DNA of 64,000 nucleotides from Hamiltosporidium tvaerminnensis FI-OER-3-3 (Eukaryota; Fungi; Microsporidia): NCBI GenBank assembly GCA_022605425.2, contig JAKIMF020000001.1, forward strand, positions 434,001-498,000, read 5' to 3'. This document shows, one piece after another, positions 1 through 38,255 of the stretch (position 1 is its first letter; each line of letters begins with the position of its first letter). The notes under the pieces were generated by a model. It saw only the letters and a list, made by a program, of their open reading frames with translations, did not search any database and had not been told where the DNA came from. The position numbers were made by a program, and so were the translations under genes.

Positions 1-1113
1 TGCAAATTTATGGATTGCAAATCATAACATTCAATATTTGGAAAAATAGTGGGAGTAAAAATTTTGTATAGATTATCTGACCCCATTTTATTATATTTTG
101 AATACTGATCAACTTTTCGAAAGATTTTCTGTAAATAGATAAGCATCTTTCTATTTTCATTTGTAATCGAAAATATAATTAAAGGCACAATATATTCTAT
201 TATTGAAGGATCCGTCTGGTTTTTTATTATTTTCATCACCCTTTCTGCAATCTGAACTGAAATTATCCCATTCATTATCTCCCGAATATATGCTTTGAAA
301 ATTGAAGCGTTGTCATGAACTGATAACTCAGTATAATCATATCTCTTTCCTGCAGCTAAAACACCCGGCATAAATTTATAATAGGCATATTTACCAGAAA
401 TTCTAAACAATCCCTCTTTTTTGATCCCTTCATCTAAAATATGGTCACCAACGGTATAAACAAATGTATTTCTTTTTTTATATGATAAGAATCTTTCTTA
501 AACGAAGATCTGAATATATCTGAAATTCTTTCTAAAATATTATCTTTAAAACTGGATCTATATTTACGAAGCTTCTTAAAGCAAAAACAAGCCAATTTTA
601 TTTTTTCTATATGGCTAAGTGAAATCATATTTTATAGTTTCATTTAGCTTTTGTTTCTCTTTTTTCTAATTTCTTGCATGGAATTTCTTTTTTTTGATCT
701 CGAGATGGTTCATTTACCAGCTTTGATTTAAAATAAATTTCATTTATTTTGTATATCATTATAGGAAATTTATATTCCATATGATATTTTAACATCGGGA
801 ATCTCTTATCTTTATGATTCCAAATGTTTATTTCATGTATTTTTACTGCTACATTTTCAAGAAAGTATAAATTTGCTTTTTTTGAATCTTCTTTAGATTT
901 TATACTCTCTTCTTCTTTCTCCTTCAATTTCGAATTTTTAATGATCCTAAATATACTTTTATGTATATTTCCCATATCATTAATATCTTGCTTGCATTCA
1001 TTGATTTTATTTAAGATTCTAATCAGTTCACTCGATTCCAGTCCCTGATTTTTTGTTACTTCTGAAATATTAATTTTTTTAATATTTCCGCTGTTCTTTA
1101 TTTTGCCAATCAT
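1..1113 (-). pseudogene. RhoGAP-domain gene copy 1; frameshifted, and 3' end runs off the window
   Basis: Apparently identical to 12814-13925 except for a 1-bp deletion near 471 and two 1-bp insertions plus substitutions at ~613-645. These split it into ORFs 640..1113 and 434..628. Could be sequencing error. Confidence 0.75.
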
Positions 1114-3367: not shown

Positions 3368-3376
3368 CCTTCTACC

Positions 3377-9945: not shown

Positions 9946-10054
9946 AAATTTTCAAAATTGCTTCTTTTCGAACAAACAACACTCGAATTTCTACGTAGAA
10001 TAAAAATTTTTCCTTCTTATTTCTTATAAATTTATAAATAATACAATTAATAAA

Positions 10055-12642: not shown

Positions 12643-12719
12643 TTTAAATAATTTTAAAAATATATTCAAATATAGTTAAAAAATAAAATTAAAACAATAA
12701 AAATCGAAAATAAAAGGAT

Positions 12720-16188: not shown

Positions 16189-17896
16189 TTGAGTGCTATG
16201 ACAGACGAGGCAAAGTAATTTTTAGAGGTGATTGGCTTAGAGATTAACAAAGAGAAGTCAGCCACAAATGATAAGTATAGTGAAGATACTGCTACCTTCT
16301 AGAAAGTGTTAGTGTTTTTAAATATTTAGGAATTATAGAAGATAGCAGAAGAATTCCAACACGTAGCTCATTTGAAGAATTACAAAGCGAACTTTTATCA
16401 AGAATTGAAAGACTTTCTCACACAAGATTAAATGCAAAAAATTTATTTTCTGCAATCAATCAACATGCGATATCGTTAATCAACTATCACATAGGAGTAC
16501 TTCGACTTGAACCGGCTGACTTCTCTAAGATAGATGATGCAGTTCGTTCGGTGTTGGTAAACAATAAGATACATCGTCTTGTAAAGAGCGTTTGTATCTT
16601 ACTAGAACAGAACTTGGAAGAGGCCTACATAGTGTTGAGTTGCGAAGCGAACATATGCTTCTGCAACTCTTGGATGTTCTTGAAAAAAGTAAAGAAAATT
16701 CAACTAGACGAGCAGAAATCCTTAAAGTGGAGAATAATAATAAAACCAATCTCTCACTCATAAAAGGCTTCTAAAAAGTAAAGTACAGGTTCGTAGAAGA
16801 AGTCACTAAGAAAAGTTTAGAAGAAGCTTAACTTGCAAAACTATACAACGAAATAGAAAAACGAAAACTTCATTCAAAGTTATATAATGCAAGGAAAAAT
16901 GAGCTTGTAAGTGTTAGTGACTCTGCAAGATGGTTAAAGAGAGGGAATATTAGGCCACGAAACGAAGCTGTGTTTTCCTATATCCAGGACAGAAATTTAT
17001 TATGGGGATCAGATGGTATGTGTCAACACTGTAATTAATTTGGTAAGACTGTAGATCATCTAGCAACTCGATGTGAAAAAATGCTAGGTCATGACTACAC
17101 CAGACGGCATAATGAAGTGGTTTGATGCAGACACTTATTTCTTCTAAATAGATATAAGTTTAAGTCCTCAAAACGAATTTGGAGTCACTCAGTTTAAGAA
17201 ATTCTTGATAATGAGTATGCAGAGATAAGAGTGGACACCAGAATTTAAATTGATGTTAAAATTTAGAGTAACAGACCCGACATATTTATTTTAGATAAGA
17301 AGAAGAATAAGATAACACTTATTGAAGTAGGAATCACTTCTCAAGATTCACTTCAAATAGTTGAAACTGAAAAACTTAGGAAGTATGACTTTCTAGCCAA
17401 TGAGCTGGGTCTTATTTACAAATGTAGTTAAGAGATAATCCCTTATGTGATGACCTGGGACGGTATTGTAACAAAATACCATAAATCTCATCTTAAAAGA
17501 CTAGAAATACACATGAATGTAGAGGCATACATTCAGTCTATAGTACTTAAGAAAACAGTCGAAACAATTTCCTTTGATCGACGAAGAGGACTTGAGTCAA
17601 GACTAAATGCCGAAGAGAGCTGGGAGAGAGCGTCAATGGGTGCTATTATGAGATCAGAGATGCATGAGGAATTAAAACCTTATTTAAAAGAAGAGAAGAG
17701 AGAGGAAGATGGTTTAAAAAATTTTAAACTAAAAAATAAAGCACCCTTTATTTCACAAGGAGGAACCACTTTAGAGGAACCGACCAATAACATAAATGAA
17801 GAGTCGAATTTGGAAGAAGAGACAGAAGTGGTTAAGGAGGTAGAAGAAAACATGTGACAAATGGTAAAAATATTTTAACCCAGAATTTTATTAAAT
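16189..17896 (+). mobile_element. Non-LTR fragment R+2
   Basis: Same 5' junction (ccttctacc|ttgagtgctatg) as R+1. ORF 17447..17857. Confidence 0.9.
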
Positions 17897-20800
17897 AAAA
17901 CTCATATGATATCTTTCTAAAAATATAAAAAAGAATATTTTGATATTAATGTATGATATATTGAATAATCACAATAGAAAACCTCCAAAATATAAGTTAA
18001 AGAAATTAATATATCAGAATTTTGTATAATACGTGATGTGTTGGAGTTAAATCTAATATACGCTATTTTGAGTATATTAGAGACAAAGAACGAATTAAAA
18101 AATCTCAAAAGGGTATATTTTCACAAAGAAAACTATTTTTTTGGTTTGAAGACGATTTTAAATAATTTAGTTGTCGATTTAAGCAAAATTTGGATGTTAC
18201 CAGACAAAATGAGTTCTTAAACATCATAAAAGTTTTTGTTTTGTCAGAATATCTAGGTTTAATGATTAATAAGGTATTTCTAATTTGACAAATAGTGTGT
18301 GCTGTCTGCTAATTATAAATTTATATTAAGGCTATTTCAAAATATTATTATATTTTTGAAAATTAAAAATTTTGTTTCCTCTAAAAGCATACTAATCTTC
18401 TAGTAGCCGGCATAACACAAATTAATTGGAAAGATTTCGGGTTTGAATACCGATTTTTACACTGTTACCTTTAAATTACAAATATTTACGCCAAAAAAAC
18501 AATCTATTTGTCACAAGAGACATTAGTAAATACCTATATCACATGGCAAACCAATACTATATTTGTATACTGTTTTCATTCCTGAGAAAAATTAATCAAT
18601 AAAGAAAAACTAAAATAAACTTAGAACTTTAAAAAGAAAATTACAAATTTTTATAGCATTAAAAGTGCCTCTTAAAATGATGAATATTTTTCGGTCTCAC
18701 GGAAACTGAAATAAATAATTATCATCAACATATTTTATTCATCCCAAAGCTAAATAAAACAGAAAAGAAATGATTATCGAGGTATCGAAACAATATTAGA
18801 GTTTGTTGGTGGTTACAAACATTTTGAATAAATTGAATGTCTCAAAGTAAAACCGAGAGAAATTAATCTAAAGCTATTAAAAGGACACTTAAAGTAAAGA
18901 TTTAAACGTTTAATGATACATAGTTGAATGTATCAAATTTATTTTACCAATCAAATTTTAGGTAAATATTATTCATTTTTCTTATAGAGTATTTGTAGCC
19001 AAACATTTAATTGATCTAGATATATGATAAATTATTTTGTGTTCTAGTTATGAACACTATACAAATAGAACTCGAGGTTCCGATAAATCGTTTCTGTCAA
19101 AATAAAACCTTAAGAAATCTTTCAGAATGTTTAATTTGAATATATATGTGATTTTGCAATTCCGTGGTTCTCTGTAAAAAAAATAAATAAATTCTGAGAA
19201 ATGAAACGATTTGGAGCAATCTTGCAATTATAATTAACTATTTCTGTGTAAAATTAAAAATAGAAAGAGAGATAAAGAGATGAAGATTAAAAAATTCATA
19301 AAAAAATATCTAGCGGATAGAAAATCGAAAATAAATCAAGCTTTATATCCTAGAAGTAAATGATAATAGGTGTTAATAACACTTACAAAAAGCTGATTAA
19401 GAAACCTTGATGTTAAATATACTAGAATTTTGTTATTATTTAAATAGAATGCCTTTTTGAGAACGAAAAAACTTAAAAACGGCAGAAATTTTGCGTCGCG
19501 ATCTTAACTACGTAAAGTAGATCCAAATTAAGAAATAAAATTTGTTTTTCTACGCATCTAAGGCTTATAAATACAAATGATCAAAGAATTTAAACGTCAT
19601 ATGAGCTATTCAGTTCAAAAGTTCGCCAAAAAAAGCGAAACTAAAAATAAATTTAGATAAAAGATATCAAATATCAAGTTAAAATTTACTTATTGTTCTG
19701 TATTGAATAGAAATTATAGAGAAAGATCTATTTCAGAAATATTTTTTTTGCTTCAAACTGGACATGCGATAGAATAAATTTAACTTTATTTTTGTTATAA
19801 GTAAAGTATTTCTTGTATATTAGAACAGAGTTTGACATCATTACAGAGTATTTGTTCATTATTTGTTTCTAGACATCATAATATGTATACAATATTAAGT
19901 TTTGCATCCGAATCAAAAATAGGACATGTGAACAGCCAATATTAGTTTAAGAGATAGTCAATTTTTGCTTTGATAGAAGAATAAAAGGAGTATAAAGATA
20001 GAATTCAGATAGATTACAAAAGTTCGTACTTATTCTTTGTAATCGAGAGGAGACATAGATCAAAGCCATATCTCATTATACTGACGTACCTGAGAAGATA
20101 TATATGTTTCGTTAAGTAAAAAAAGATTCAAAAACCATTTGAATTTTTTTGTGTGCAAAATTCGAAAATAAAGCGTCGAATGTAATAACGAAGAAAATGT
20201 TGGAACGTAATAATTCTAGGAATAAATAAATCGGAATGGAATCGGTAATCATCATAAAAAACTTATTAATAAAATATAATTTAATTTTTATATTTTTGAT
20301 TTCTACAAATCTAATTTAATATTTATTTTACCAAAAAGGTAAAATAAATTTTTAAACCACAATACCATCAGTTTTTTTACAATATTTTTCTTTTATAATA
20401 TTGTAAAAAGGAAATGGCTAGTTATAGACCCAAGATGCATGTAAAAGCATTTGGAACTAAAACTACGCATTTTTTTCCTAGTATTTTGTTAGTACTGAAG
20501 ACCGTCAATTATTATCAAATAAATTATTTACATTTGTCATAGTACTAAAATCATTATTCGTAGGTTTTCCAGAAGTAAGTTGTGTGAAAATATTCAATTT
20601 ATATGTAATAATTTGAAAATTCGATTTTATTTGTATATTGACTTAGTTAAGAGCTATGGTTTTTTTTATACCAAATCATTCTTTATTTAAAACAACATAT
20701 TTGAAAGATTTTCTTAATTATAGTAACTTAAAATTGCAATGAATATGTGTGTGTTTGAGTTGTTTTAAACAAAATATAAATATAGCTTTAATAAAAGCTA

Positions 20801-23800
20801 TTTAAAAAATTCTTTCAAGGATTTGGAAATAATTATACGGAGTTAAAATTAACAGTTCAACCCATTTTTTTGAAATTAAAAAATAGATCAGATAAATTCA
20901 TTTTTTTTTATATTATAAGATAAACCAAAATACCTGTCTTTTATTTATTATTAAATAAATAATATTACTCTTGGGCGGATATATCTGTTACCGTACTTTT
21001 ATTTTGAATTTATCATATAAGGAATATTTTGTATATCATTTACAAAAATTACATTAAGACAATAAAATTTATGATAAAAAATACAAAAAAATAAACGCAA
21101 TTTAAAAACAACGGGAATAATATTATTTGATTAAATAGATTCTTTGTTCTGTCTTCAGATATAAATTTTGTATTCCTAGAGCTCTTCGATAAAGAATTTA
21201 AAAGTGTCGAATTAATTCTCTTTTAAATAATCCAGCTTCTTCTATATAAAGCAATTTATTTTGTTTCTTTGTGCCTATAGTTTACATTGAAGAATTGTAG
21301 AATATATACATCTTTTTCTGGATTAAATTATAGACAATTTTACGAAGCTCAGCATTTTCAATATTCTCAAAACCTAAGCCTTTTGGTTCTTCATATAAAT
21401 TCTTGTAGACCAAAAAGAGTGATATACGGCTCTATACTATTATCTCTTGAATAATGTATATTCTGTATTAATTTTGAATTAATTATATAACTGATTCCTT
21501 TTCTAGTATTTTAAATACTTCTTCATTAATATTATTGAAATTGACTACAATGAAATATCCATATACCGCGAAAAATCAATGCCTGCATAGGTAACATAAT
21601 TACTAGTCGTCTTCATAATGTTTATATTAAAATATACATTATTAGAAATTTCTCATCTGTTTCTTTTCGACAAGATAATTCTTTTGCGATTGTTCTTACG
21701 ACTATTTACTAATTAAGGCAACCTGTCCAGGATTTCCAGGATGTTTCAGACTTTTATTTACAAACTTGATATAATGCAAACATAGAAATTCTGTAATATA
21801 AGAAAATAAAATTCGTGATATTTATCGCTTTTTAAAATCTAGGAGCATTTTTATGGTTGAATAATTGCTTTAGAGTGGATATAATGTTTTCACTGTTTCA
21901 ATTTTCAATACAAATAAAAAAAGAAACTTTAAAACAAATAGAAAAATTTAGAAACTATTGATATCTGTCATTTTCATTTCCATATTTCTTTGATCAAATC
22001 AATCCAATTGTACTATAGTTTAGGAATATCTTAAAATATGTGAATTATTCACAAAACGACTTAATAATTCATATTTTTTGCAAGTGAAAAAATTTAAAAT
22101 ATATTTTTTCTTTTTCTTTTAAATTCGATAATGCGAGTTTAAAGGTGTTCATACATGCCTTCATTCCTTTTTGATTGCGTGGGAAGTGTATCAAAAAGTG
22201 CATGTTTCTTTATAAAATTTTAATCCGGTAACAGCCTCTGTAATATTTTTTTCTTTATTTTTAAGAAATTTTTACTTTTGTTAATTTTAAGTTTTTAATT
22301 TAGTTAAAATTTACATTTTTACTGAAATGATAACCAAGATGTGCATTATTTCATTCTGATAATTATATTTATAACTTTCAATAGTACATTATCGCCTCAA
22401 TCCTTCTCACAAAACCATATAAATAAGAAAAATAATGAAGTTATACGCAAAGTTCTTAAAAATAAAAAAAAACTTATGAATTTTGTATATAAAAAATATT
22501 TTTTCTTTAAAAAAAAGATGTATAAGTGGAGAAAGAATAATCTCATTTTAAACTATCGCTTGGAAATGTGTGTATAAAATTTGTGTGAAAATCATTGCTT
22601 CCATTGAGGTGGGATATAAAACACGCCTGATCTATAGGCCAATTCCCTGTAATCCCGAGTTACATTAGACAAAAAAAACAAATGGAAAACTTTCATTTGT
22701 TCATATTCGACACTAAGAGGTAAAAACAGAATGGAATAATTGAGAAATTAAGTCTAAAAATTTTAAAAATTGCTTCTTTTCGAACAAACAACAACCGAAT
22801 TTCAACGTAGAATAAAAAATTTTCCTTCTTATTTCTTATAAATTTATGATATAATACAATTAATAAAACCGATAATGAAGTTTTGGATGCCAATATTTAT
22901 ACTTAACAAGTATCTAAACATTCAAATCCAAAAAAAGATTAAATATCACACAGTTCAAGAACTTTCTGAAAATAATGATCAGAAATAAAACTAGAACTGA
23001 GGTATAAAGCTTATTACAATATTTTCAAAATAGACAAGATATATTCATGATGTAAAATAAATTAAATATGATTACACATATCTAGGGTGTAAACACGAAC
23101 AAGGTTCGCTTCAAAGAATGTAGACCAACAAACTTAAGACATACAAATTACTTCTGTTTGGTTTATACTGTTTATATAATTTTTAGAAAAAAATTTGTTA
23201 TTTCTTAGTTTCGGATTATACAGTGGCAAAATACTATAAGATATATCTTGAAAATTCTAAATACTCATAGAATTAGAAACACGCATGTAATCAACAATAC
23301 ACTAAAAAGGCCAGTCGAAACAATTTCTTTTCAATAACCAAGAGAATTCGAGTCAGGACCAAATGGCAAAGAGATTTGAAAGAAAGTACCCTAAGTATTT
23401 TACAAGGAAGAGAGATCCCAAGGAAACAATACCCTTTTAAAGTCTACTCCATTGAGTATTGTGACTTTAAACAAGTAAAAACAAAAAAAAAATCCAATCC
23501 TTATTTTGAATTAAGATGCCAATATCAGAGATTCGAACAAAATAAAACTTACCTAATTATTCCTTTTAATCTGTTATAACTCGGTATTATAGAGAATTGA
23601 ACTATAGATCCGGTGTAGTTTATATCCTACCAAAATGGCAACAATGAATTTCACAACAACTTCAAATAATCATTACCAAGCAGATGGTTTTTAATGTGCT
23701 TATCGTACCTCTTTTTATAAACAAAAAACAAGAATAAGTTTAAAAGAAGAAAATTAAATATTTAAAATGATGGAATGTTATTCGAAATTTAAAAAAAAAA

Positions 23801-23805
23801 TTAAG
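17897..23805. repeat. Spacer module S copy 2
   Basis: Near-identical to S1 and S3. Confidence 0.9.
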
Positions 23806-23894
23806 TTTAAAAATCGTATATAAAATTATGAGTTAGAATATTTTTACCATTTTTATATATTTTCTTCCACCTCTTTTAACTTTAAAAATCGTTA

Positions 23895-25597
23895 ATAATA
23901 TTGTGAGTTAAAATATTTTTACGATTTTTATATGTTTTCTTCCACCTCTTCAACCATTTTGTCTCTTCTTCGATATCCGACTCTTTATTTATGTTATTGG
24001 TCGGTTCCTCTAAAGTGGTTCTTCCTTGTGGAATAAAGGGTGCTTTATTTTTTGGTTTAAATTTTTTTGCACCATCTTCCTCTCTCTTCTCTTCTTTTAA
24101 ATAAGGTTTTAATTCCTCATGCATCTTTGCTCTCATGATAACACCCATTGACGCTCCTCCCAGCTCTCTTCGGCATTTAGTCCTGACTCAAGTCCTCTTC
24201 GTCGATCAAAGGAAATTGTTTCGACTGTTTTCTTGAGTACTATAGACTGAATATATGCCTCAACATTCATGGGTATTTCTAGTCTTTTAAAATGATATTT
24301 ATGGTATTTTGTCACAATACCGTCCCAGGTCATCACATAAGGGATTATCTCTTAACTACATTTGTAAATAAGACCCGGCTCATTGGCTAGAAAGTCATAC
24401 TTCCTAAGTTTTTCAGTTTCAACTATTTTAAGTAAATCTTGGGAAGTGATTCCTGCTTCAATGAGTATTATCTTATTCTTCTTCTTTTCTAAAATAAATA
24501 TTTCGGGTCTGTTATTCCGAATTTTAACATCAGTTTAAATTCTGGTGTCCACTCTTATCTCTGCATACTCATTATCAAGAATTTCTTGAACTGAGTGACT
24601 CCTTATTCGTTTTGAAGACTTAAACTTATATCTATTTAGAAGAAGTAGGTGTAGGCATTTAACCAATTCATTATGCCGTTCTGTGTAGTCATGACCTAGC
24701 ATTTTTTCACATCGAGTTGCTAGATGATCTACCGTCTTACCAAATTTATTACAGTGTTGGCACATACCATCTGATCCCCATAATAAATTTCTATCCTGGA
24801 TATAGCAGAACACAGCTTCGTTTCGTGGCCTATTATTCCCTCTTTTTAACCATCTTGAAAAGTCACTAAGACTTACAAGCTCATTTTTCCTTGCATTATA
24901 TAACTTTGAATGAAGTTTTCGTTTTTCTATTTCGTTATATAGTTTTGCAAGTTAAGCTTCTTCTAAAATTTTCTTAGTGACTTCTTCTACCAACCTGTAC
25001 TTTACTTTTAAAAAGCCTTTTATTAGTGCAAGATGGGTTTTGTTATTATTTTCCACCCTTGAGATTGCTGCTCGTCTGATTGATATTTCTTAACTTTTTT
25101 CAAGACAATCCAAGAGTTGCAGAAGCATATGTTCGCTTTGCAACCCAAAACTATTTAGGTCTCTTCCAAGTTCTGTTCGTGTAAGATACAAACGCTCTTT
25201 ACAAGACGATGTATCTTATTGTTTACCAACACCGAACGAACTGCATCATCTATCTTAGAGAAGTCAGCCAGTTCAAGTCGAAGTACTCCATGTGATAGTT
25301 GATTAACGATATCGCATGTTGATTGATTAATTGCAGAAAATAAATTTTTAAAGTTTAATCAGGTATGACAAAGTCTTTCAATTCTTGATAAAAGTTTGCT
25401 CTGTACTTCTTCAAATAAGCTACGTGTTGTAATTCTTCTGCTATCTTCTATAATTCCTAAATATTTAAAAACACTAACACTTTCTAGAAGGTAGCAGTAT
25501 CTTCACTATACTTATCATTTGTGGCTGAATTCTCTTTGTTAATCTCTAAGCCAATCCCCTCTAAAAATTCCTTTGCCTCGTCTGTCATAGCACTCAA
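23895..25597 (-). mobile_element. Recombinant non-LTR fragment (R- type 3' flank, R+ type 5' junction)
   Basis: The 3' end abuts the end of S, as R-1 does. The 5' end is joined to module U (cactcaa|ggtagaagg), as R+ is. Confidence 0.88.
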
Positions 25598-27860
25598 GGT
25601 AGAAGGAAAAAATATAAACAACTCAAATTATAAGAATTTAAAAGTTTAGGAAACTTAAGAACAACGATTAGTCTATGAAATAATTGATTAAAAAATGTAA
25701 ACAACTCAAATAATAAGAAAATAAAAGTTTAAGAAACTTAAGAATAACGATTAGTCTATGAAATAATTGATTAAAAAATATAAAAAATTCAAATTTTAAG
25801 AAAATAAAAGTTTAGGAAATTTAAGAATAATAATCAGTCTATGGATAGAATTAATTGGTTTTTTAAAAAAAATTATAGATATAAATAAGAGAAATGAATT
25901 AGAAATATTTTTATTATTTCTTAATTTGGGTTGTTTATATCTATAATAGATTTTTTCGTTTCATGAATTCTAAATTCTAAATTTTAAATTTAGTGTTTTT
26001 TTATTGCTGTTTCTTAAAATTTGGAGATTATTATTTAATTGAATTTAGAATTTAGTCGAAGGTTTAATTATTTCATTTTTATTTCTTGTATTTATTTGAT
26101 TTGAATAGGCAAAGGTTTTACTTTTATATTTTCTTTAAATATTCATTCGAATCTTTTTTTGTAATTCTATTATTTTTTTAAAAAATGTGTTATTTTAAAT
26201 ATTTATACGAAGCTAAAACCAAAGACTTTTGGATTTTTTTTAAATTTAAAAGAGGTGGAAGAAAATATATAAAAAGGTAAAAAATTTTTAACCTTGAATC
26301 TTATAAACGATTTTTAAATTTAAATGAGGTGGAAGAAAATATATAAAAATGGTAAAAATATTTTAACTCATAATTTTATTAAATATAAAAAATTATACTT
26401 AGATATTTACTATTAGATAAGTAAAACAGTTTATTCTACAACACCTTCTTCTTTAAATGTATTTTAATTTAATTTTAATTCCCTAAAAATTAAAATCTTA
26501 TATTCCATCCTAATATAATTTCACATTAATTTAATTCATTCTAATAAATTTCTTATAAATTCAATCTTAATTTTATTCGATGATTTAATTTTAATCTTAT
26601 CTAATAAATGATGCCTGTATGATCGTTTGGCATTTAATTCGTATACTTTTGTCCCTATTTTTTATTTAAAGTTCTAAATACTAACCAAGTAACTTAAAGA
26701 TCAAAATAATAGAATTAAGTTTTCGTATTAAGAAGATTTTTCTAAATAAATATGATAACAGGTCTAATCTTGAATTTTATTCCTAGTTTAAACTATATAA
26801 GAATAAATCTTAAACAAAAAAATTTCTTAATTTCATTTATATTAAATTAAAATAATACTTTAATGTATAGAATGCTATTATGAGATATATCTCCTATATA
26901 ATATTATTCTTAACATCTAATTATGTTTTATTCTCGTATGTTACCAAAAAATTCTGTTGCAAAGCTAGAATGGTTTACTAGTATTTCGCAATATATTTTG
27001 CTATATATTTACTATGTTATTCTTTGTTGCCTGATAGACATCAAACGATTGCATTTACATGTGTTTTTAATCTATCAAAGATTTTGGCACGTATTGGAGT
27101 ATAAATATAGCAGATTAAAACAAAATTTTCGGTTTATAAATTATACTATGATTGCTACTTAGTATAACAGATGTGTTATAGTGAGAAATCCGAAAAAAAA
27201 TATTTTTTTGATAAAATATTTAAAATTTAATTCTAAAAGTCGGACTTATAATCTCATTCAGTAGCTAAAAATTTTAAAATATATAAATTCAAATAAAATG
27301 TAGGACTTAAATAATCTCATTTGCTTGCTGATAAGGGTAAAAAAATATCTACATACTAAAATAAAATGTAAAATTCTTTTTTAATTCTATTCTATCAGAT
27401 ATAAAGTACTATTAAGTTAAAATTTTTATTAAATTCCATCTAATTCGAAAAGATATATAATTTTAGGTATTTACAATCACTCATCTCGAATACACTTTTT
27501 AATTTAAAAAAATAATAGATAAAAGAATAAAAGATTTTAAAATAATTTAGATAAATAAATCTCTTTTCTTACAAAACGAAAGAACATCTTCAATTGATGA
27601 TTTAAAATAGTCAATTGTTTAGTATTTTATCTTTAGTTAACAATATAAGATATGATAATAAATAGGTAGATGAATTTTATTAAAAATTAATTTAATATCT
27701 GATGTAATATCATTAAGGAAATTAAAATAAGATTAAAAGATATATTAATAACCTTTTTTTCATTTTGATACACTTTGTTTAAGATAAAGAGAATCAATGC
27801 AGATTTACAAACAAACATTCGATTTGAAATCTATATAATAAAAAAAACAATAATAAACAA
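25598..27860. repeat. Module U copy 3, inverted
   Basis: Reverse complement of 1114-3376 with scattered SNPs. Confidence 0.9.
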
Positions 27861-29066
27861 ATGATTGGCAAAATAAAGAACAGCGGAAATATTAAAAAAA
27901 TTAATATTTCAGAAGTAACAAAAAATCAGGGACTGGAATCGAGTGAACTGATTGGAATCTTAAATAAAATCAATGAATGCAAGCAAGATATTAATGATAT
28001 GGGAAATATACATAAAAGTATATTTAGAATTATTAAAAATTCGAAATTCAAGGAGAAAGAAGAAGAGAGTATAAAATCTAAAGAAGATTTAAAAAAAGCA
28101 AATTTATCCTTTCTTGAAAATGTAGCAGTAAAAATACATGAAATAAACATTTGGAATCATAAAGATAAGAGATTCCCGATGTTAAAATATCATATGGAAT
28201 ATAAATTTCCTATAATGATATACAAAATAAATGAAATTTATTTTAAATCAAAGCTGGTAAATGAACCATCTCGAGATCAAAAAAAAGAAATTCCATGCAA
28301 GAAATTAGAAAAAAAAGAAACAAAAGCTAAAGATACTTTAAAATATGATTCACTTAGTGATATAGAAAAAATAAAATTGGCTTGTTTTTGCTTTAAGAAG
28401 CTTCGTAAATATAGATCCAGTTTTAAAGATAATATTTTAGAAAGAATTTCAGATATATTCAGATCTTCGTTTAAGAAAGATTCTTATCATATAAAAAAAG
28501 CAAATACATTTGTTTATACCGTTGGTGACCATATTTTAGATGAAGGGATCAAAAAAGAGGGATTGTTTAGAATTTCTGGTAAATATGCCTATTATAAATT
28601 TATGCCGGGTGTTTTAGCTGCAGGAAAGAGATATGATTATACTGAGTTATCAGTTCATGACAACGCTTCAATTTTCAAAGCATATATTCGCGAGATAATG
28701 AATGGGATAATTTCAGTTCAGATTGCAGAAAGGGTGATGAAAATAATAAAAAACCAGACGGATCCTTCAATAATAGAATATATTGTGCCTTTAATAATAT
28801 TTTCGATTACAAATGAAAATAGAAAGATGCTTATCTATTTGCAGAAAATCTTTCGAAAAGTTGATCAGTATTCAAAATATAATAAAATGGGGTCAGATAA
28901 TCTATACAAAATTTTTACTCCCACTATTTTTCCAAATATTGAATGTTATGATTTGCAATCCATAAATTTGCAAATTGAGATTGTAAAAAGAATTTTTGAG
29001 TCAAATTTATCAGAAATCCCTTGTTTTTTGTATGAAGAAGCACTTTCGGCAGCTAATAATCAATAA
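27861..29066 (+). CDS. RhoGAP-domain protein, copy 3 (401 aa, inverted orientation)
   Basis: Intact ORF; 6 aa differences from copy 2. Confidence 0.88.
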   Translation: MIGKIKNSGNIKKINISEVTKNQGLESSELIGILNKINECKQDINDMGNIHKSIFRIIKNSKFKEKEEESIKSKEDLKKANLSFLENVAVKIHEINIWNHKDKRFPMLKYHMEYKFPIMIYKINEIYFKSKLVNEPSRDQKKEIPCKKLEKKETKAKDTLKYDSLSDIEKIKLACFCFKKLRKYRSSFKDNILERISDIFRSSFKKDSYHIKKANTFVYTVGDHILDEGIKKEGLFRISGKYAYYKFMPGVLAAGKRYDYTELSVHDNASIFKAYIREIMNGIISVQIAERVMKIIKNQTDPSIIEYIVPLIIFSITNENRKMLIYLQKIFRKVDQYSKYNKMGSDNLYKIFTPTIFPNIECYDLQSINLQIEIVKRIFESNLSEIPCFLYEEALSAANNQ

Positions 29067-29143
29067 ATCCTTTTATTTTCGATTTTTATTGTTTTAATTT
29101 TATTTTTTAACTATATTTGAATATATTTTTAAAATTATTTAAA

Positions 29144-30705
29144 ATAGAAGATAGCAGAGGAATCCCAACACGTAGCTCATTTGAAGAATTACAAAGCGAA
29201 CTTTTATCAAGAATTGAAAGACTTTGTCATACCTGATTAAACTTTAAAAATTTATTTTCTGCAATCAATCAACATGCGATATCGTTAATCAACTATCACA
29301 TAGGAGTACTTCGACTTGAACCGGCTGACTTCTCTAAGATAGATGATGCAGTTCGTTCGGTGTTGGTAAACAATAAGATACATCGTCTTGTAAAGAGCGT
29401 TTGTATCTTACACGAACAGAACTTGGAAGAGACCTAAATAGTTTTGGGTTGCAAAGCGAACATATGCTTCTGCAGTTCTTGGATTGTCTTGAAAAAAGTA
29501 AAGAAATATCAATCAGACGAGCAGCAATCTCAAGGGTGGAAAATAAAAATAAAACCCATCTTGCACTAATAAAAGGCTTTTTAAAAGTAAAGTACAGGTT
29601 GGTAGAAGAAGTCACTAAGAAAAGTTTAGAAGAAGCTTAACTTGCAAAACTATATAACGAAATAGAAAAACGAAAACTTCATTCAAAGTTATATAATGCA
29701 AGGAAAAATGAGCTTGTAAGTCTTAGTGACTCTTCAAGATGGTTAAAAAGAGGAAATAATAGGCCACGAAACGAAGCTGTGTTTTGCTATATCCAGGATA
29801 GAAATTTATTATGGGGATCAGATGGTATGTGCCAACACTGTAATAAATTTGGTAAGACGGTAGATCATCTAGCAACTCGATGTGAAAAAATGCTAGGTCA
29901 TGACTACACCAGACGGCATAATGAATTGGTTAGATGCCTACACCTACTTCTTCTAAATAGATATAAGTTTAAGTCTTCAAAACGAATAAGGAGCCACTCA
30001 GTTCAAGAAATTCTTGATAATGAGTATGCAGAGATAAGAGTGGACACCAGAATTAAAACTGATGTTAAAATTCGGAATAACAGACCCGACATATTTATTT
30101 TAGATAAGAAGAAGAATAAGATAACACTCATTGAAGTAGGAATCACTTCCCAAGATTGACCTAAAATAGTTGAAACTGAAAAACTTAGGAAGTATGACTT
30201 TCTAGCCAATGAGCTTGGTCTTATTTACAAATGTAGTTAAGAGATAATCCCTTATGTGATGACCTAGGACGGTATTGTGACAAAATACCATAAATATCAT
30301 CTTAAAAGACTAGAAATACCCATGAATGTTGAGGCATATATTCAGTCTATAGTACTTAAGAAAACAGTCGAAACAATTTCCTTTGATCGACGAAGAGGAC
30401 TTGAGTCAGGACTAAATGCCGAAGAGAGCTGGGAGAGAGCGTCAATGGGTGTTATTATGAGATCAGAGATGCATGAGGAATTAAAACCTTATTTAAAAGA
30501 AGAGAAGAGAGAGGAAGATGGTTTAAAAAATTTTAAACTAAAAAATAAAGCACCCTTTATTTCACAAGGAGGAACCACTTTAGAGGAACCGACCAATAAC
30601 ATAAATGAAGAGTCGAATTTGGAAGAAGAGACAGAAGTGGTTAAGGAGGTAGAAGAAAACATGTGACAAATGGTAAAAATATTTTAACCCAGAATTTTAT
30701 TAAAT
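29144..30705 (+). mobile_element. Recombinant non-LTR fragment (R- type 5' junction, R+ type 3' flank)
   Basis: Begins ~80 bp after the RhoGAP stop (aaa|atagaagatagc) and ends at the start of S. ORF 29779..30159 has CCHC, RHN and RPDI. Confidence 0.88.
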
Positions 30706-33700
30706 AAAACTCATATGATATCTTTCTAAAAATATAAAAAAGAATATTTTGATATTAATGTATGATATATTGAATAATCACAATAGAAAACCTCCAAAAT
30801 ATAAGTTAAAGAAATTAATATATCAGAATTTTGTATAATACGTGATGTGTTGGAGTTAAATCTAATATACGCTATTTTGAGTATATTAGAGACAAAGAAC
30901 GAATTAAAAAATCTCAAAAGGGTATATTTTCACAAAGAAAACTATTTTTTTGGTTTGAATACGATTTTAAATAATTTATTTGTCGATTTAAGCAAAATTT
31001 GGATGTTACCAGACAAAATGAGTTCTTAAACATCATAAAAGTTTTTGTTTTGTCAGAATATCTAGGTTTAATGATTAATAAGGTATTTCTAATTTGAAAA
31101 ATAGTGTGTGCTGTTTGCTAATTATAAATTTATATTAAGGCTATTTCAAAATATTATTATATTTTTGAAAATTAAAAATTATGTTTACTCTAAAAGGATA
31201 CTAATCTTATAGTAGCCGGCATAACACAAATTAATTGGAAAGATTTCGGGTTTGAATACCGATTTTTACACTGTTACCTTTAAATTACAAATATTTACGC
31301 CAAAAAAACAATCTATTTGTCACAAGAGACATTAGTAAATACCTATATCACATGGCAAACCAATACTATATTTGTATACTGTTTTCATTCCTGAGAAAAA
31401 TTAATCAATAAAGAAAAACTAAAATAAACTTAGAACTTTAAAAAGAAAATTACAAATTTTTATAGCATTAAAAGTGCCTCTAAAAATGATGAATATTTTT
31501 TGGTCTCACGGAAACTGAAATAAATAATGCTCATCAACATATTTTATTCATCTGTAGAGCTAAATAAAACAGAAAAGAAATGATTATCGAGGTATCGAAA
31601 CGATTTTAGAGTTTGTTGGTGGTTACAAACATTTTGAATAAATTGAATGTCTCAAAGTAAAACCGAGAGAAATTAATCTAAAGCTATTAAAAGGACACTT
31701 AAAGTAAAGATTTAAACGTTTAATGATACATAGTTGAATGTATCAAATTTATTTTACCAATCAAATTTTAGGTAAATATTATTCATTTTTCTTATAGAGT
31801 ATTTGTAGCCAAACATTTAATTGATCTAGATATATGATAAATTATTTTGTGTTCTAGTTATGAACACTATACAAATAGGACTCGAGGTTCCGATAAATCG
31901 TTTCTGTCAAAATAAAACCTTAAGAAATCTTTCAGAATGTTTAATTTGAATATATATGTGATTTTGCAATTCCGTGGTTCTCTGTAAAAAAAATAAATAA
32001 ATTCTAAGAAATGAAACGATTTGGAGCAATCTTGCAACAATAATAAACTATTTCTGTGTAAAATTAAAAATAGAAAGAGAGATAAAGAGATGAAGATTAA
32101 AAAATTCATAAAAAAATATCTAGCGGATAGAAAATCGAAAATAAATCAAGCTTTATATCCTAGAAGTAAATGATAATAGGTGTTAATAACACTTACAAAA
32201 AGCTGATTAAGAAACCTTGATGTTAAATATACTAGAATTTTGTTATTATTTAAATAGAATGCCTTTTTGAGAACGAAAAAACTTAAAAACGGCAGAAATT
32301 TTGCGTCGCGATCTTAACTACGTAAAGTAGATCCAAATTAAGAAATAAAATTTGTTTTTCTGCGCATCTAATGCTTATAAATACAAATGATCAAAGAATT
32401 TAAACGTCCTATGAGCTATTCAGTTCAAAAGTTCGCCAAAAAAAGCGAAACTAAAAATAAATTTAGATAAAAGATATCAAATATCAAGTTAAAATTTACT
32501 TATGGTTCTGTATTGAATAGAAATTATAGAGAAAGATCTATTTCAGAAATATTTTTTTTGCTTCAAACTGGACATGCGATAGAATAAATTTAACTTTATT
32601 TTTGTTATAAGTAAAGTATTTCTTGTATATTAGAACAGAGTTTGACATCATTACAGAGTATTTGTTCATTATTTGTTTCTAGACATCATAATATGTATAC
32701 AATATTAAGTTTTGCATCCGAATCAAAAATAGGACACGTGAACAGCCAATATTAGTTTAAGAGATAGTCAATTTTTGCTTTGATAGAAGAATAAAAGAAG
32801 TATAAAGATAGAATTCAGATAGATTACAAAAGTTCGTACTTATTCTTTGTAATCGAGAGGAAACATAGATCAAAGCCATATCTTATTATACTGACGTACC
32901 TGAGAAGATATATATGTTTCGTTAAGTAAAAAAAGATTCAAAAACCATTTGAACTCTTTTTGTGTGCAAAATTCGAAAATAAAGCGTCGAATGTAATAAC
33001 GAAGAAAATGTTGGAACGTAATAATTCTAGGAATAAATAAATCGGAATGGAATCGGTAATCATCATAAAAAACTTATGAATAAAATATAATTTAATTTTT
33101 ATATTTTTGATTTCTACAAATCTAATTTAATATTTATTTTTCCAAAAAGGTAAAATAAATTTTTAAACCACAATACAATCAGTTTTTTTACAATATTTTT
33201 CTTTTATAATATTGTAAAAAGGAAATGGCTAGTTATAGACCCAAGATGCATGTAAAAGCATTTGGAACTAAAACTACGCATTTTTTTCCTACTATTTTGT
33301 TAGTACTGAAGACCGTCAATTATTATCAAATAAATTATTTACATTTGTCATAGTACTAAAATCATTATTCGTAGGTTTTCCAGAAGTAAGTTGTGTGAAA
33401 ATATTCAATTTATATGTAATAATTTGAAAATTCGATTTTATTTGTATATTGACTTAGTTAAGAGCTATGGTTTTTTTTATACCAAATCATTCTTTATTTA
33501 AAACAACATATTTGAAAGATTTTCTTAATTATAGTAACTTAAAATTGCAATGAATATGTGTGTGTTTGAGTTGTTTTAAACAAAATATAAATATAGCTTT
33601 AATAAAAGCTATTTAAAAAATTCTTTCAAGGATTTGGAAATAATTATACGGAGTTAAAATTAACAGTTCAACCCATTTTTTTGAAATTAAAAAATAGATC

Positions 33701-36610
33701 AGATAAATTCATTTTTTTTTATATTATAAGATAAACCAAAATACCTGTCTTTTATTTATTATTAAATAAATAATATTACTCTTGGGCGGATATATCTGTT
33801 ACCGTACTTTTATTTTGAATTTATCATATAAGGAATATTTTGTATATCATTTACAAAAATTACATTAAGACAATAAAATTTATGATAAAAAATACAAAAA
33901 AATAAACGCAATTTAAAAACAACGGGAATAATATTATTTGATTAAATAGATTCTTTGTTCTGTCTTCAGATATAAATTTTGTATTCCTAGAGCTCTTCAA
34001 TAAAGAATTTAAAAGTGTCGAATTAATTCTCTTTTAAATAATCCAGCTTCTTCTATATAAAGCAATTTATTTTGTTTCTTTGTGCCTATAGTTTACATTG
34101 AAGAATTGTAGAATATATACATCTTTTTCTGGATTAAATTATAGACAATTTTACGAAGCTCAGCATTTTCAATATTCTCAAAACCTAAGCCTTTTGGTTC
34201 TTCATATAAATTCTTGTAGACCAAAAAGAGTGATATACGGCTCTATACTATTATCTCTTGAATAATGTATATTCTGTATTAATTTTGAATTAATTATATA
34301 ACTGATTCCTTTTCTAGTATTTTAAATACTTCTTCATTAATATTATTGAAATTGACTACAATGAAATATCCATATACCGCGAAAAATCAATGCCTGCATA
34401 GGTAACATAATTACTAGTCGTCTTCATAATGTTTATATTAAAATATACATTATTAGAAATTTCTCATCTGTTTCTTTTCGACAAGATAATTCTTTTGCGA
34501 TTGTTCTTACAACTATTTACTAATTAAGGCAACCTGTCCAGGATTTCCAGGATGTTTCAGACTTTTATTTACAAACTTGATATAATGCAAACATAGAAAT
34601 TCTGTAATATAAGAAAATAAAATTCGTGATATTTATCGCTTTTTAAAATCTAGGAGCATTTTTATGGTTGAATAATTGCTTTAGAGTGGATATAATGTTT
34701 TCACTGTTTCAATTTTCAATACAAATAAAAAAAGAAACTTTAAAACAAATTGAAAAATTTAGAAACTATTCATATCTGTCATTTTCATTTCCATATTTCT
34801 TTGATCAAATCAATCCAATTGTACTATAGTTTAGGAATATCTTAAAATATGTGAATTATTCACAAAACGACTTAATAATTCATATTTTTTGCAAGTGAAA
34901 AAATTTAAAATATATTTTTTCTTTTTCTTTTAAATTCGATAATGCGAGTTTACAAGGTGTTCATACATGCCTTCATTCCTTTTTGATTGCGTGGGAAGTG
35001 TATCAAAAAGTGCATGTTTCTTCTAAAATTTTAAATCGGTAACAGCCTCTGAAATATTTTTTTATTTATTTTTAAGAAATTTGTTCTTTTATTAACTTTA
35101 AGTTTTTAATTTAGTTAAAATTTACATTTTTACTGAAATGATAGCCAAGATGTGCATTGTTTCATTCTGATAATCATTTTTATCACTTTCAAAAATAAAT
35201 TATCGCCTCAATCCTTCTCACAAAACCATATAAATAAGAAAAATAATGAACTTATACGCAAAGTTCTGTAGAAAATAAAAAAAACTTATGAATTTTGTAT
35301 ATAAAAAATATTTTTTCTTTAAAAAAAAGATGTATAAGTGGAGAAAGAATAATCTCATTAAAAACTATCGCTTGGAAATGTGTGTATAAAATTTGTGTGA
35401 AAATCATTGCTTCCATTGAGGTGGGATATAAAACACCCCTGATCTATAGGCCAATTCCCTGTAATCCCGAGTTACAATAGACAAAAAAAACAAATGGAAA
35501 ACTTTCATTTGTTCATATTCGACGCCAAGAGGTAAAAACAGAATGGAATAATTGAGTAAGTAAGTCTAAAAATTTTCAAAATTGCTTCTTTTCGAACAAA
35601 CAACACTCGAATTTCTACGTAGAATAAAAATTTTTCCTTCTTATTTCTTATAAATTTATAAATAATACAATTAATAAAACCGATAATGAAGTTTTGGATG
35701 CCAATATTTATACTTAACAAGTATTTAAACATTCAAATCCAAAAAAAGATTAAATATCACACAGTTCAAGAACTTTCTGAAAATAATGATCAGAAATAAA
35801 ACTAGAACTGAGGTATAAAGCTTATTACAATATTTTCAAAATAGACAAGATATATTCATGATGTAAAAGAAATTAAATATGATTACACTTATCTAGGGTG
35901 TAAACACGAACAAGATTCGCTTCAAAGAATGTAGACCAACAAACTTTAGACATACAAATTACTTCTGTGTGTTTTATTCTGTTTATAAAATTATTAGAAA
36001 AAAATTTGTTATTTCTTAGTTTCGGATTATACATGACAAAATACCATAAGATATATCATGAAAATTCTAAATACTCATAGAATTAGAAACACGCATGTAA
36101 TCAACAATACACAAAAAGGCAGTCGAAACAATTTCTTTTCAATAACCAAGAGAATTCGAGTCAGGACCAAATGGCAAAGAGATTTGAAAGAAAGTACCAT
36201 AAGTATTTTACAAGGAAGAGAGATCCCAAGGAAACAATACGCTTTTAAAGTCTACTCCATTGAGTATTGTGACTTTAAACAAGTAAAAACAAAAAAAAAT
36301 CCAATCCTTATTTTGAATTAAGATGCCAATATCAGAGATTCGAACAAAATAAACTTACCTAATTATTCCTTTTAATCTGTTATTACTCGGTATTATAGAG
36401 AATTGAACTATAGATCCGGTGTAGTTTATATCCTACCAAAATGGCAACAATAAATTTCACAACAACTTCAAATAATCATTACCAAGCAGATGGTTTTTAA
36501 TGTGCATATCCTACCTCTTTTTATAAACAAAAAACAAGAATAAAATTTAGAAGAAGAAAATTAAATATTTAAAATGATGGAAGGTTATTCAAAAAATAAA
36601 AAAAAAATTT
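30706..36610. repeat. Spacer module S copy 3
   Basis: Near-identical to S1 and S2. Confidence 0.9.
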
Positions 36611-36699
36611 AAGTTTAAAAATCGTATATAAATTATGAGTTAAAATATTTTTACCATTTTTTATATTTTCTTCACCTCTTTTAACTTTAAAAATCGTTT

Positions 36700-38255
36700 A
36701 TAATATTGTGAGTTAAAATATTTTTACGATTTTTATATGTTTTCTTCTACCTCTTCAACCATTTTGTCGCTTCTTCGATATCCGACTCTTTATTTATGTT
36801 ATTGGTCGGTTCCTCTAAAGTGGTTCTTCCTTGTGGAATAAAGGGTGCTTTATTTTTTGGTTTAAATTTTTTTGCACCATCTTCCTCTCTCTTCTCTTCT
36901 TTTAAATAAGGTTTTAATTCCTCATGCATCTTTGCTCTCATAATAACACCCATTGACGCTCCTCCCAGCTCTCTTCGGCATTTAGTCCTGACTCAAGTCC
37001 TCTTCGTCGATCAAAGGAAATTGTTTCGACTGTTTTCTTAAGTACTATAGACTGAATATATGCCTCACAATTCATGTGTATTTCTAGTCTTTTAAGATGA
37101 GATTTATGGTATTTTGTTACAATACCGTCCCAGGTCATCACATAAGGGATTATCTCTTAACTACATTTGTAAATAAGACCCAGCTTATTGGCTAGAAAGT
37201 CATACTTCCTAAGTTTTTCAGTTTCAACTATTTTAAGTCAATCTTGGGAAGTGATTCCTACTTCAATGAGTGTTATCTTATTCTTCTTCTTATCTAAAAT
37301 AAATATGTCGGGTCTGTTATTCTGAATTTTAACATCAGTTTAAATTCTGGTGTCCACTCTTATCTCTGCATACTCATTATCAAGAATTTCTTGAACTGAG
37401 TGACTCCTAATTTGTTTTCAGGACTTAAACTTATATCTATTTAGAAGAAGTAGATGTAGGCATCTAACCAATTCATTATGCCGTTCTGTGTAGTCATGAC
37501 CTAGCATTTTTTCACATCGAGTTGCTAGATGATCTACCGTCTTACCAAATTTATTACAGTGTTGGCACATACCATCTGATCCCCATAATAAATTTCTATC
37601 CTGGATATAGCAGAACACAGCTTCGTTTCGTGGCCTATTATTCCCTCTTTTTAACCATCTTGAAAAGTCACTAAGACTTACAAGCTCATTTTTCCTTGCA
37701 TTATATAACTTTGAATGAAGTTTTCGTTTTACTATTTCGTTATATAGTTTTGCAAGTTAAGCTTCTTCTAAACTTTTCTTAGTGACTTCTTCTACCAACC
37801 TGTACTTTACTTTTAAAAAGCCTTTTATTAGTGCAAGATGGGTTTTATTATTATTTTCCACCCTTGAGATTGCTGCTCGTCTGATTGATATTTCTTTACT
37901 TTTTTCAAGACAATCCAAGAGTTGCAGAAGCATATGTTCGCTTTGCAACCCAAAACTATTTAGGTCTCTTCCAAGTTCTGTTCGTGTAAGATACAAACGC
38001 TCTTTACAAGACGATGTATCTTATTGTTTACCAACACCGAACGAACTGCATCATCTAACTTAGAGAAGTCAGCCGGTTCAAGTCGAAGTACTCCTATGTG
38101 ATAGTTGATTAACGATATCGCATGTTGATTGATTGATTGCAGAAAATAAATTTTTTGCATTTAATCTAGTGTGACAAAGTCTTTCAACTCTTGATATAAG
38201 TTTGCTTTGTACTTCTTCAAATAAGCTACGTGTTGGAATTCCTATGTTATCTTCT
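36700..38255 (-). mobile_element. Non-LTR fragment R-3
   Basis: Same junctions as R-1. ORFs 36938..37141, 37418..37618 and 37757..37996. Confidence 0.9.

Follow-up and report, generated by a model that had tools for sequence, protein, structure and literature searches.

Inverted segments in a RhoGAP repeat array of Hamiltosporidium tvaerminnensis and their probable origin by recombination between LINE pieces

Introduction

In a repeat array of the microsporidium Hamiltosporidium tvaerminnensis, a RhoGAP gene lies in reversed orientation between two inverted retrotransposon fragments. The initial annotation of the 64,000-nt stretch of DNA analysed here (the window) regarded this arrangement as a candidate flip-flop locus. 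The locus thus raises the question whether the cassette is still being turned, is turned by a dedicated switch, or was turned in the past by recombination between repeats. Inversions by non-allelic homologous recombination (NAHR) between inverted repeats are exemplified by recurrent 'toggling' inversions in humans (e.g. FLNA-EMD) and by Ty-mediated inversions in yeast; long-repeat-mediated inversions reportedly also occur in Candida albicans. Literature searches retrieved nothing specific on microsporidian cases of inversion or transduction, and no paper joining Hamiltosporidium and RhoGAP.

Results

Architecture of the array

The reversed gene belongs to a 12.8-kb repeat array (G000:C12:364424-475725) of about eight units that is split by a 17.5-kb insert. 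The array extends about 70 kb further upstream of the window and totals about 110 kb. Its components in and around the reversed unit are as follows.

1-41725, no strand assigned: portion of the array inside the window (repeat finding, self-BLAST, module mapping)
11075-17895: reference block in ancestral orientation, with Rm at 11075-12660, G at 12661-14400, U at 14401-16314 and Rp at 16315-17895 (self-BLAST, module mapping)
17896-23891, + strand: spacer S to the left of the inverted unit, 6.0 kb, orientation kept
30705-36696, + strand: spacer S to the right of the inverted unit, orientation kept (module mapping)

The orientation of the reference block is taken to be ancestral because of the array edges. 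The amplified segment is composed of spacer S, a LINE 3' piece of 1.58 kb, the RhoGAP ORF and 2 kb of upstream DNA. Every unit-unit junction is exactly filled by a 1.71-kb LINE copy ("R+"), which is missing from both array edges and is oriented opposite to the LINE 3' piece of the amplified segment. Successive LINE pieces thus point in opposite directions, and each core and each spacer is enclosed by inverted repeats of 1.58 kb. Spacer S is restricted to the array and contains nothing coding and no ORF of at least 90 aa. An Rfam scan of positions 11000-31000 matched no family.

The inverted unit

23892-25471, - strand: arm R13, a LINE 3' piece whose 3' end is position 23892; recombinant, with an outer block of the S-right-end type and an inner block of the U-side type
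25472-25597, - strand: 126 nt of extra LINE sequence, part of the longer junction LINE copy, moving with the U end
25472-29125, no strand assigned: inverted core, with U inverted at 25472-27385 and G inverted at 27386-29125 (repeat finding, self-BLAST, module mapping)
26323-30704, + strand: composite retroelement in the inverted unit, consisting of a LINE 3'-end relic of about 65 nt, about 1 kb, the RhoGAP ORF, 17 nt and LINE nt 2218-3794 (= arm R14)
27861-29066, + strand: RhoGAP ORF, intact, 401 aa, PF00620, arginine-finger motif FRISG present
29126-30704, + strand: arm R14, a LINE 3' piece whose 3' end is position 30704; recombinant, with an inner block of the G-side type and an outer block of the S-left-end type
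57400-61193, - strand: parent LINE, full-length but frameshifted, 3794 nt with RVT_1 pieces; nt 2218-3794 of this copy are the counterpart of the arms

The 3.65-kb RhoGAP core is cleanly inverted at 25472-29125 between two inverted LINE pieces of about 1.58 kb. In self-BLAST, the block 11075-17894 aligned in reverse with 30704-23892 (95.6% over 6835 nt), in agreement with repeat finding. The junctions showed neither gain nor loss, the 6821-nt block matching the 6813-nt inverted block end-to-end. An inverted match of 3.65 kb at 98-99% identity would not arise by chance. On the R13 side, 23892-25597 aligned with the LINE at 57405-59122. The spacers flanking the unit are co-linear (16315-25449 with 29126-38255, and 1-12660 with 12814-25471; self-BLAST), and module mapping placed both flanking copies of S on the + strand. 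The inversion of a RhoGAP cassette between inverted retrotransposon repeats of about 1.5 kb, with spacers of unchanged orientation, as described in the initial annotation, was thus confirmed by self-BLAST, repeat finding and module mapping, and the repeats proved to be inverted LINE 3' pieces.

The RhoGAP ORF matched PF00620 with an E value of 5e-22 (Pfam). It is located on the - strand in other units of the window (12720-13925 and 38335-39540), and the ORF of the composite has a dN/dS of 0.2-0.4. The gene is intact and appears to be selectively maintained. An exact-protein look-up of the RhoGAP of unit 3 gave no match on record.

Haplotypes and mosaicism of the arms

One outer haplotype is common to all seven arms adjoining the right end of S, and the other to all five arms that fully adjoin the left S end. 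Likewise, one inner haplotype is present in all eight arms adjoining G and the other in all six arms adjoining the U end. In each of the 14 array arms tested, outer blocks track the S ends and inner blocks track G or U. Arm ends hence match the adjoining DNA, as expected from exchange inside the arms, and the end haplotypes of R13 and R14 agree with the description of outer flanks that are unchanged and inner junctions that are exchanged.

When compared in inverted orientation, R13 and R14 reach 95.6% similarity over 1587 nt, rising to 98% in the central 1133 nt; they differ at about 29 columns within 270-1419, versus 26 within the first 250 columns. R11 and R12 are only 93% alike. By the Hudson-Kaplan bound, at least 31 recombination events are required in the 1.6-kb arms, i.e. 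19 per kb, versus 4.3 per kb in S and 5.7 per kb in the cores, and R09 and R10 have in common a stretch of about 0.5 kb that is non-reciprocal. The arms are densely mosaic and contain tracts of gene conversion. As the arm centres are homogenised, the mapping of the crossover by diagnostic SNPs, which had been proposed as a check, was run and left the exchange point unmappable. Set against its nearest unrecombined relatives, R13 appears to switch at a different point from R14, so that a single simple reciprocal crossover is not demonstrated. What stands of the view that the unit is the exact product of one crossover is the inversion with its exchanged ends; the exactness does not, the centres being homogenised and mosaic and the switch points different.

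Repeated inversions across the array

Module mapping over C12:364-476 kb gave the orientations -,+,-,+,+,+,-,+ for the cores and +,-,-,+,+,+,+ for the spacers; three of eight cores and two of seven spacers are flipped. The nearest relative of inverted core c7 is upright core c2 (27 differences, 0.7%), while 66 differences separate it from inverted core c1. Similarly, inverted spacer s3 is nearest to upright spacer s7 (32 differences). Private differences number 27-90 per core. By these distances, the flipped copies are not mutual closest relatives, and the flips would be independent. Since spacer S also flips, the RhoGAP cassette is not special.

A composite retroelement carrying RhoGAP

The arms had been described as dead retrotransposon fragments. 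Their LINE nature was upheld, but the "R-" arm is the 3' part of a RhoGAP-carrying composite found on at least eight contigs, and so forms the end of a composite retroelement dispersed in the genome rather than a separate dead fragment. The composite, of which the genome contains about 18 near-full-length copies, has the order LINE, 1 kb, RhoGAP ORF, LINE 3' piece of 1.58 kb. Its LINE-3'-end/GU and GU/17-nt/LINE-2218 junctions are identical in at least ten loci (on C1, C3, C4, C5, C6, C12, C14 and C15), and the same junctions occur in contigs of the independent draft assembly GCA_004325075.1. In the draft assembly, contigs with related RhoGAPs represent dispersed copies at contig ends, none of them with spacer S, and are therefore uninformative on array orientation.

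The 5' ends of the composite vary, with the upstream LINE starting at nt 142, 246, 264, 294, 2102, 2299, 2839, 3014 or 3165. The 3' end is constant, all copies terminating at the LINE 3' end. At the C6 copy, a 12-nt duplication (CTTATTATAACT) surrounds the whole composite and was matched by 0 of 300 shuffles; no significant target-site duplication was found at seven other copies examined. The DNA 3' of LINE and composite copies is unrelated and AT-rich. Together, the features of these copies argue for the RhoGAP gene plus LINE tail being a composite retroelement spread by LINE retrotransposition.

Three other interpretations of the element were considered: (i) a separate site-specific LINE insertion next to every RhoGAP copy, on its upstream side, in place of one composite, judged unlikely because the 3' flanks are unrelated and the composite as a whole lies within one target-site duplication; (ii) identity of RhoGAP with ORF1 of the LINE, rejected as RhoGAP has no similarity to the N-terminal 404 aa of the LINE; (iii) an IS-flanked composite transposon, a likeness drawn in the initial annotation that did not hold, the arms being 5'-truncated, decayed LINE 3' parts with a longest ORF of 151 aa.

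In LINE-1 3' transduction and LINE gene mobilisation, DNA that lies downstream of a LINE but is foreign to it is likewise copied along to new sites, with variable 5' truncation and a target-site duplication. The Hamiltosporidium element differs in that its cargo is a complete, selected 401-codon gene and that a second LINE 3' part (nt 2218-3794) after the cargo gives the composite its 3' end; the cargo is therefore internal rather than terminal.

Recombination genes

No match to the tyrosine or serine recombinase families (PF00589, PF00239) was found in the 21.6-Mb genome, which contains three genes of the Rad51 family. A Pfam scan covering 12 ORFs of the window, with some 18 shorter ones (91-183 aa) outside its scope, detected only RhoGAP, coatomer beta, TFIIF beta, TRM5, LRR and RT domains. 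The absence of an encoded recombinase noted from the window was thus borne out in the ORFs scanned and extends to these two families in the genome.

Discussion

The arrangement is probably best explained by repeated and presumably neutral homologous recombination in the past between inverted LINE pieces. General recombination of the Rad51 type between inverted LINE arms would have inverted segments of the array several times, and the unit at 23892-30704 would be one product of such arm-to-arm exchange. The inversions would then be past, most likely neutral rearrangements, and not a programmed or regulatory switch. We infer that the flips were made by recombination in the cell rather than by the assembler, that they are fixed, and that they do not affect expression, neutrality being read from the anatomy only. 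The RhoGAP ORF moves as one with about 2-2.2 kb of upstream DNA and with the adjoining inner arm sequence immediately downstream of the ORF. Because gene and upstream DNA move jointly, an expression switch is unlikely, and so is a functional flip-flop.

The locus shares with NAHR inversions the kilobase inverted homologous arms, breakpoints within arms, absence of sequence gain or loss, arms left chimeric, inter-arm gene conversion and lack of a dedicated recombinase. It differs in that the arms are LINE pieces in a tandem array, with about 15 consecutive invertible segments of which several are flipped. NAHR inversions may moreover be polymorphic among individuals, whereas one orientation per position is observed in the Hamiltosporidium array.

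It is rather unlikely that flipping is ongoing, i.e. that homologous recombination still acts at a measurable rate, that both orientations are present in cells or isolates and that the assembly represents one isomer. At least five flipped segments across the array, the close relationship of flipped and upright copies (0.7% between c7 and c2), homogenised arm centres with gene-conversion tracts between the arms of one unit, and the presence of Rad51 genes are compatible with such activity, but no position has been observed in more than one orientation, similarity between the arms of several units is only 93% (R11 vs R12), which lowers recombination rates, and 27-90 private differences per core are also compatible with older events. 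Plastid genomes, herpesvirus genomes and the yeast 2-micron plasmid likewise contain both orientations between inverted repeats and form sets of isomers. There, however, isomers are equimolar within one population, in contrast to the single orientation per position in the array, and the 2-micron plasmid has the FLP recombinase, whereas the Hamiltosporidium genome had no match to the two recombinase families. A live toggle with about 15 LINE-bracketed segments still flipping, many isomers per clonal line and a composite still retrotransposing is an unlikely extension of this scenario; a transposon would then be the vehicle of gene-family expansion in a microsporidian.

Very unlikely is an error by the assembler, or in assembly merging and manual curation, that misread the inverted repeat of a truly upright unit. 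A NextDenovo ONT assembly was merged with a Canu PacBio assembly by quickmerge and manual curation, the PacBio read N50 of 1.54 kb is below arm length, and the authors report that large tandem repeats hampered assembly (PMC10542269). A mis-join within an arm would yield the same exchanged arm ends as a real crossover, so that arm-end patterns cannot separate the two. Contigs from public runs (Logan; four runs from four studies; 23000-27000 at 99% likeness) were 60-220 nt long, none of them bridging an arm. Short-read polishing was used in the assembly (PMC10542269) and could have created part of the SNP mosaic in a multi-copy array. Against an artefact, the ONT read N50 of 32.7 kb exceeds two array units, corresponding to 2.5 (PMC10542269), the 2.68-Mb contig C12 is uninterrupted across the array, and five flipped segments with their own private variants and differently mosaic arms would demand five separate errors.

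A programmed switch of the shufflon or phase-variation type, with a site-specific recombinase regulating RhoGAP, is close to refuted: it has in its favour the overall look of both orientations between inverted repeats, but neither recombinase family was found in the genome, the arms are decayed LINE pieces of 1.58 kb and not short sites, the gene moves with its own upstream DNA, and the non-coding spacer is flipped as often as the gene. Bacterial shufflons and phase-variation elements (Rci, Hin, FimB/E) resemble the array in that adjacent segments are independently inverted between repeats; of their short specific sites, adjacent site-specific recombinase and changed gene/promoter linkage, none of the three was found in the RhoGAP array.

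Past homologous recombination between LINE arms opens no new mechanism, the inversion being a textbook outcome of exchange between transposon copies in opposite orientation. Caution is needed with assemblies and SNP calls in the array region. One LINE family appears to have carried RhoGAP to about 18 places, filled the junctions of the array and supplied the arms for inversion and gene conversion. The locus provides a concrete example of transposons shaping genome expansion and gene-family growth in a large-genome, asexual intracellular microsporidian parasite.

Anatomy of the inverted unit and its array

Window self-comparison and module mapping bore out the core flip between unflipped spacers that the initial annotation had described. 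In the unit at 23892-30704, the 3654-nt core (25472-29125), made up of the RhoGAP-bearing piece (G) and the DNA upstream of RhoGAP (U), is inverted between two LINE 3' pieces ("arms"), and the spacers on both sides are unflipped. The claimed swap of junctions was also recovered, the left arm R13 being M-type outside and p-type inside, and the right arm R14 p-type outside and M-type inside. Judged from the sequence, the inversion in this unit is real and clean, and it is not the only one: the LINE-jointed array holds several.

The genome comprises 21.6 Mb in 17 contigs (~25% G+C). The tandem array has a period of 12.8 kb and is already running at the window start; after fetching of 80 kb upstream and mapping of the modules it was found to occupy C12:364424-475725 (C12, contig JAKIMF020000001.1; the window is C12:434001-498000), broken by 17.5 kb of other DNA.

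Features of the array and its surroundings (window positions unless prefixed by a contig)
Array unit: spacer S, 6.0 kb; arm Rm, 1586 nt; G; U, 1.9 kb; arm Rp, 1581 nt
Within G of the upright unit, minus strand: RhoGAP ORF, 401 aa (PF00620, E 3e-22)
27861-29066, plus strand: RhoGAP ORF of the inverted unit
23801-23950, and the equivalent place in each unit: repeat of the LINE 3' end at the right end of S
41798-44341: coatomer-beta gene
61193-57400, minus strand: decayed full-length LINE copy with RVT_1 pieces
C12:358563-362345, minus strand: intact parent-LINE copy with a single ORF, 1260 aa (RVT_1 at residues 509-750), ~2 kb left of the array
C12:390055-407530: array-splitting insert of 17.5 kb with a 306-aa 2OG-Fe(II) oxygenase ORF and a LINE relative (80% diverged) whose 1250-aa frame is open

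The two arms of a unit, Rm and Rp, are 93% alike and run in opposite orientation. As the orientation of the LINE pieces alternates, inverted repeats bracket every core and every spacer, and flips were seen in both kinds of segment: along the array, core orientations run -,+,(gap),-,+,+,+,-,+ and spacer orientations +,-,-,+,+,+,+. No ORF in spacer S reaches 90 aa, and no copy of the spacer was found in the genome outside the array. It carries a ~230-nt repeat twice in opposite orientation (22520-22760 and 23535-23715; S ~4625-4862 and ~5640-5817), which looks like a MITE and occurs at dozens of genome sites with 72-83% identity. The last ~75 nt of S are 89-91% identical to the arm's first ~60 nt plus the junction, so that the LINE 3' end is tandemly duplicated there.

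At the left array edge the first S is preceded by unrelated DNA without a LINE piece; at the right edge the last U extends to ~41725 and is followed by unique DNA ahead of the coatomer-beta gene. All internal junctions consist of the same U end, a ~1.71-kb 5'-truncated LINE copy and the S start (16190-17895 in unit 2, the upright reference). This structure of edges and junctions indicates that the amplified segment was S, Rm, G and U; Rp is read as the filler of the duplication junction, and the upright orientation as the ancestral state. U positions 1530-1779 (15930-16180) hold an 84-nt tandem duplication (88% identity) directly before the junction LINE, and the last array unit terminates within it.

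A composite LINE-RhoGAP element

The arms match a non-LTR retrotransposon (3794 nt; at least 35 copies in the genome) over its nt 2218-3794. The 1260-aa ORF of this element aligns co-linearly with human LINE-1 ORF2p in PDB (E 3e-18), and the span of the LINE match and the position of RVT_1 define the arms as the post-RT part plus the 3' end. Array arms are decayed (longest ORF 151 aa); given the intact ORF beside the array, the parent family may still be active. On contig C4 (480352-526378), four LINE copies at ~14.1-kb intervals hint at a second tandem array with LINE copies in it.

Copies of the core lie dispersed through the genome: G+U positions 1-2803 recur on many contigs with 92-94% identity. 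At ten fetched loci the match begins at the LINE 3' end and continues unbroken across Rm and G to U:1063.

Dispersed composite, sense strand: LINE (variable 5' start) to nt 3794; 1.0 kb of non-LINE DNA; RhoGAP ORF; 17 nt; LINE nt 2218-3794

Copies differ in where the upstream LINE begins (nt 142, 246, 264, 294, 2102, 2299, 2839 or 3165) and in their 3' flanks, which are unrelated; both internal junctions are identical throughout. On contig C6, a target-site duplication of 12 nt encloses the entire composite (0 of 300 shuffles gave a match); seven other composite copies showed no significant duplication. The same junctions lie beside unique genes in contigs of the independent short-read assembly GCA_004325075.1, one of which has an additional LINE truncation point at nt 3014. 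By its constant junctions, variable 5' ends and unrelated flanks, the composite behaves as one LINE-mobilised retroelement, with the RhoGAP cassette as its mobile cargo. The earlier view of the arms as dead retro fragments needs changing for Rm, which is the composite's tail and not an independent insertion. In the array-unit form the upstream LINE 3' end is reduced to ~65 nt.

About 18 near-full-length RhoGAP copies (at least 89% amino-acid identity) were found in the genome, plus a few broken array copies; 16 of the ~18 lack an internal stop. The gene is intact in five of eight array copies, including the inverted one, and in nine of 13 dispersed copies examined, with dN/dS of 0.22 among array and 0.42 among dispersed copies. 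FRISG, the motif at the arginine finger, and DNLYKIFTP, that at the conserved Asn, are present. NCBI lists proteins that match the window's RhoGAP exactly or almost exactly under Hamiltosporidium tvaerminnensis; ordinary RhoGAP paralogues are just 30-39% identical, and H. magnivora has a partial relative. Three of the eight array copies carry 1-nt frameshifts (window -93 to 1113; C12:421083; C12:410591), which may be homopolymer errors of the ONT-based assembly and not real pseudogenes.

Evidence for exchange within the arms

Alignment of 17 arm copies in one orientation gave identities of 88-98%, compared to 97.6-99.5% for S copies and 97.5-99.9% for cores; the arms are thus far more diverse. 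They were typed at 123 sites at which Rm and Rp of unit 2 differ. In the outer block (columns 1-~250), all seven arms adjoining the right end of S have one state and the five arms fully adjoining its left end the alternative; arm R10 keeps the latter at the outermost five sites only. The inner block (last ~40 columns) has one state in 8/8 arms beside G and the other in 6/6 beside the U end. These states are independent of segment orientation, and the stretch of the arms between the two end blocks is mosaic. Within columns 270-1419, ~29 columns distinguish R13 from R14, compared to 26 within the first 250, and arms R09 and R10 share a common state across ~0.5 kb, a non-reciprocal tract. The Hudson-Kaplan minimum was 31 recombination events in the arms (19 per kb), with 4.3 per kb in S and 5.7 per kb in cores. 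Relative to the nearest unrecombined arms (R15, R08), apparent switch points lie at ~column 1500 in R13 and diffusely in columns 400-1200 in R14. Because the arms are mosaic and these points do not coincide, the "exact product of one crossover" proposed initially cannot be demonstrated; a crossover accompanied by gene conversion fits the pattern.

The published near-chromosome assembly was built from ONT reads (N50 32.7 kb) and PacBio CLR reads (N50 1.54 kb) with Illumina polishing, two assemblies being merged by quickmerge and curated manually (PMC10542269). A mis-join made by the assembler within an arm would yield an identical arm-end pattern. It is unlikely: the ONT read N50 covers 2.5 units, and one error would be required for each of the five flipped segments, which are differently mosaic. 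Logan contigs and short-read runs at 99% likeness covered all bins of 23000-27000 in pieces of 60-220 nt; with arm centres common to several arms, no short sequence is diagnostic of the inverted state. The SNP mosaics may contain some noise from short-read polishing, as the region is multi-copy.

Inverted core c7, that of the unit studied here, differs at 27 positions from upright c2 and at 66 from inverted c1; for inverted spacer s3 the closest copy is upright s7 (32 differences; 117 from inverted s2). Flipped copies thus do not form a clade, which favours, though not firmly, several separate inversions, inter-unit gene conversion blurring the trees. The 'inverted' core c3 (C12:405689-413439) consists of a near-full-length LINE followed by U(1063..1), G and an arm, an arrangement corresponding to the dispersed form of the composite with the LINE joined at U:1063. 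Its core sequence is nonetheless array-type (~97.5%); the unit may have arisen, for example, by recombination within the 65-nt LINE relic.

Mechanism and significance

In agreement with the claimed absence of a recombinase, no Phage_integrase or Resolvase family match was found anywhere in the genome, and control genomes did give matches. Three Rad51-family genes are present. Two equal-scoring Rad51 matches on contig C1 (1488211-1488942 and 1502204-1502935), 14 kb apart in opposite orientation, suggest another recent inverted duplication. General homologous recombination across inverted repeats is an established mechanism and is sufficient here. The core would have been inverted by such recombination between the 1.58-kb repeats, and ordinary exchange between inverted LINE pieces probably explains the inversion best. 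The RhoGAP ORF, ~2.2 kb upstream and the adjoining inner arm part travel as a single piece and the spacers lack coding content, which makes a regulatory role unlikely; nothing in the sequence points to a programmed switch. The value added by this analysis lies in the anatomy: a selected, LINE-borne RhoGAP gene, a duplication junction filled by a LINE, and arms that record much exchange.
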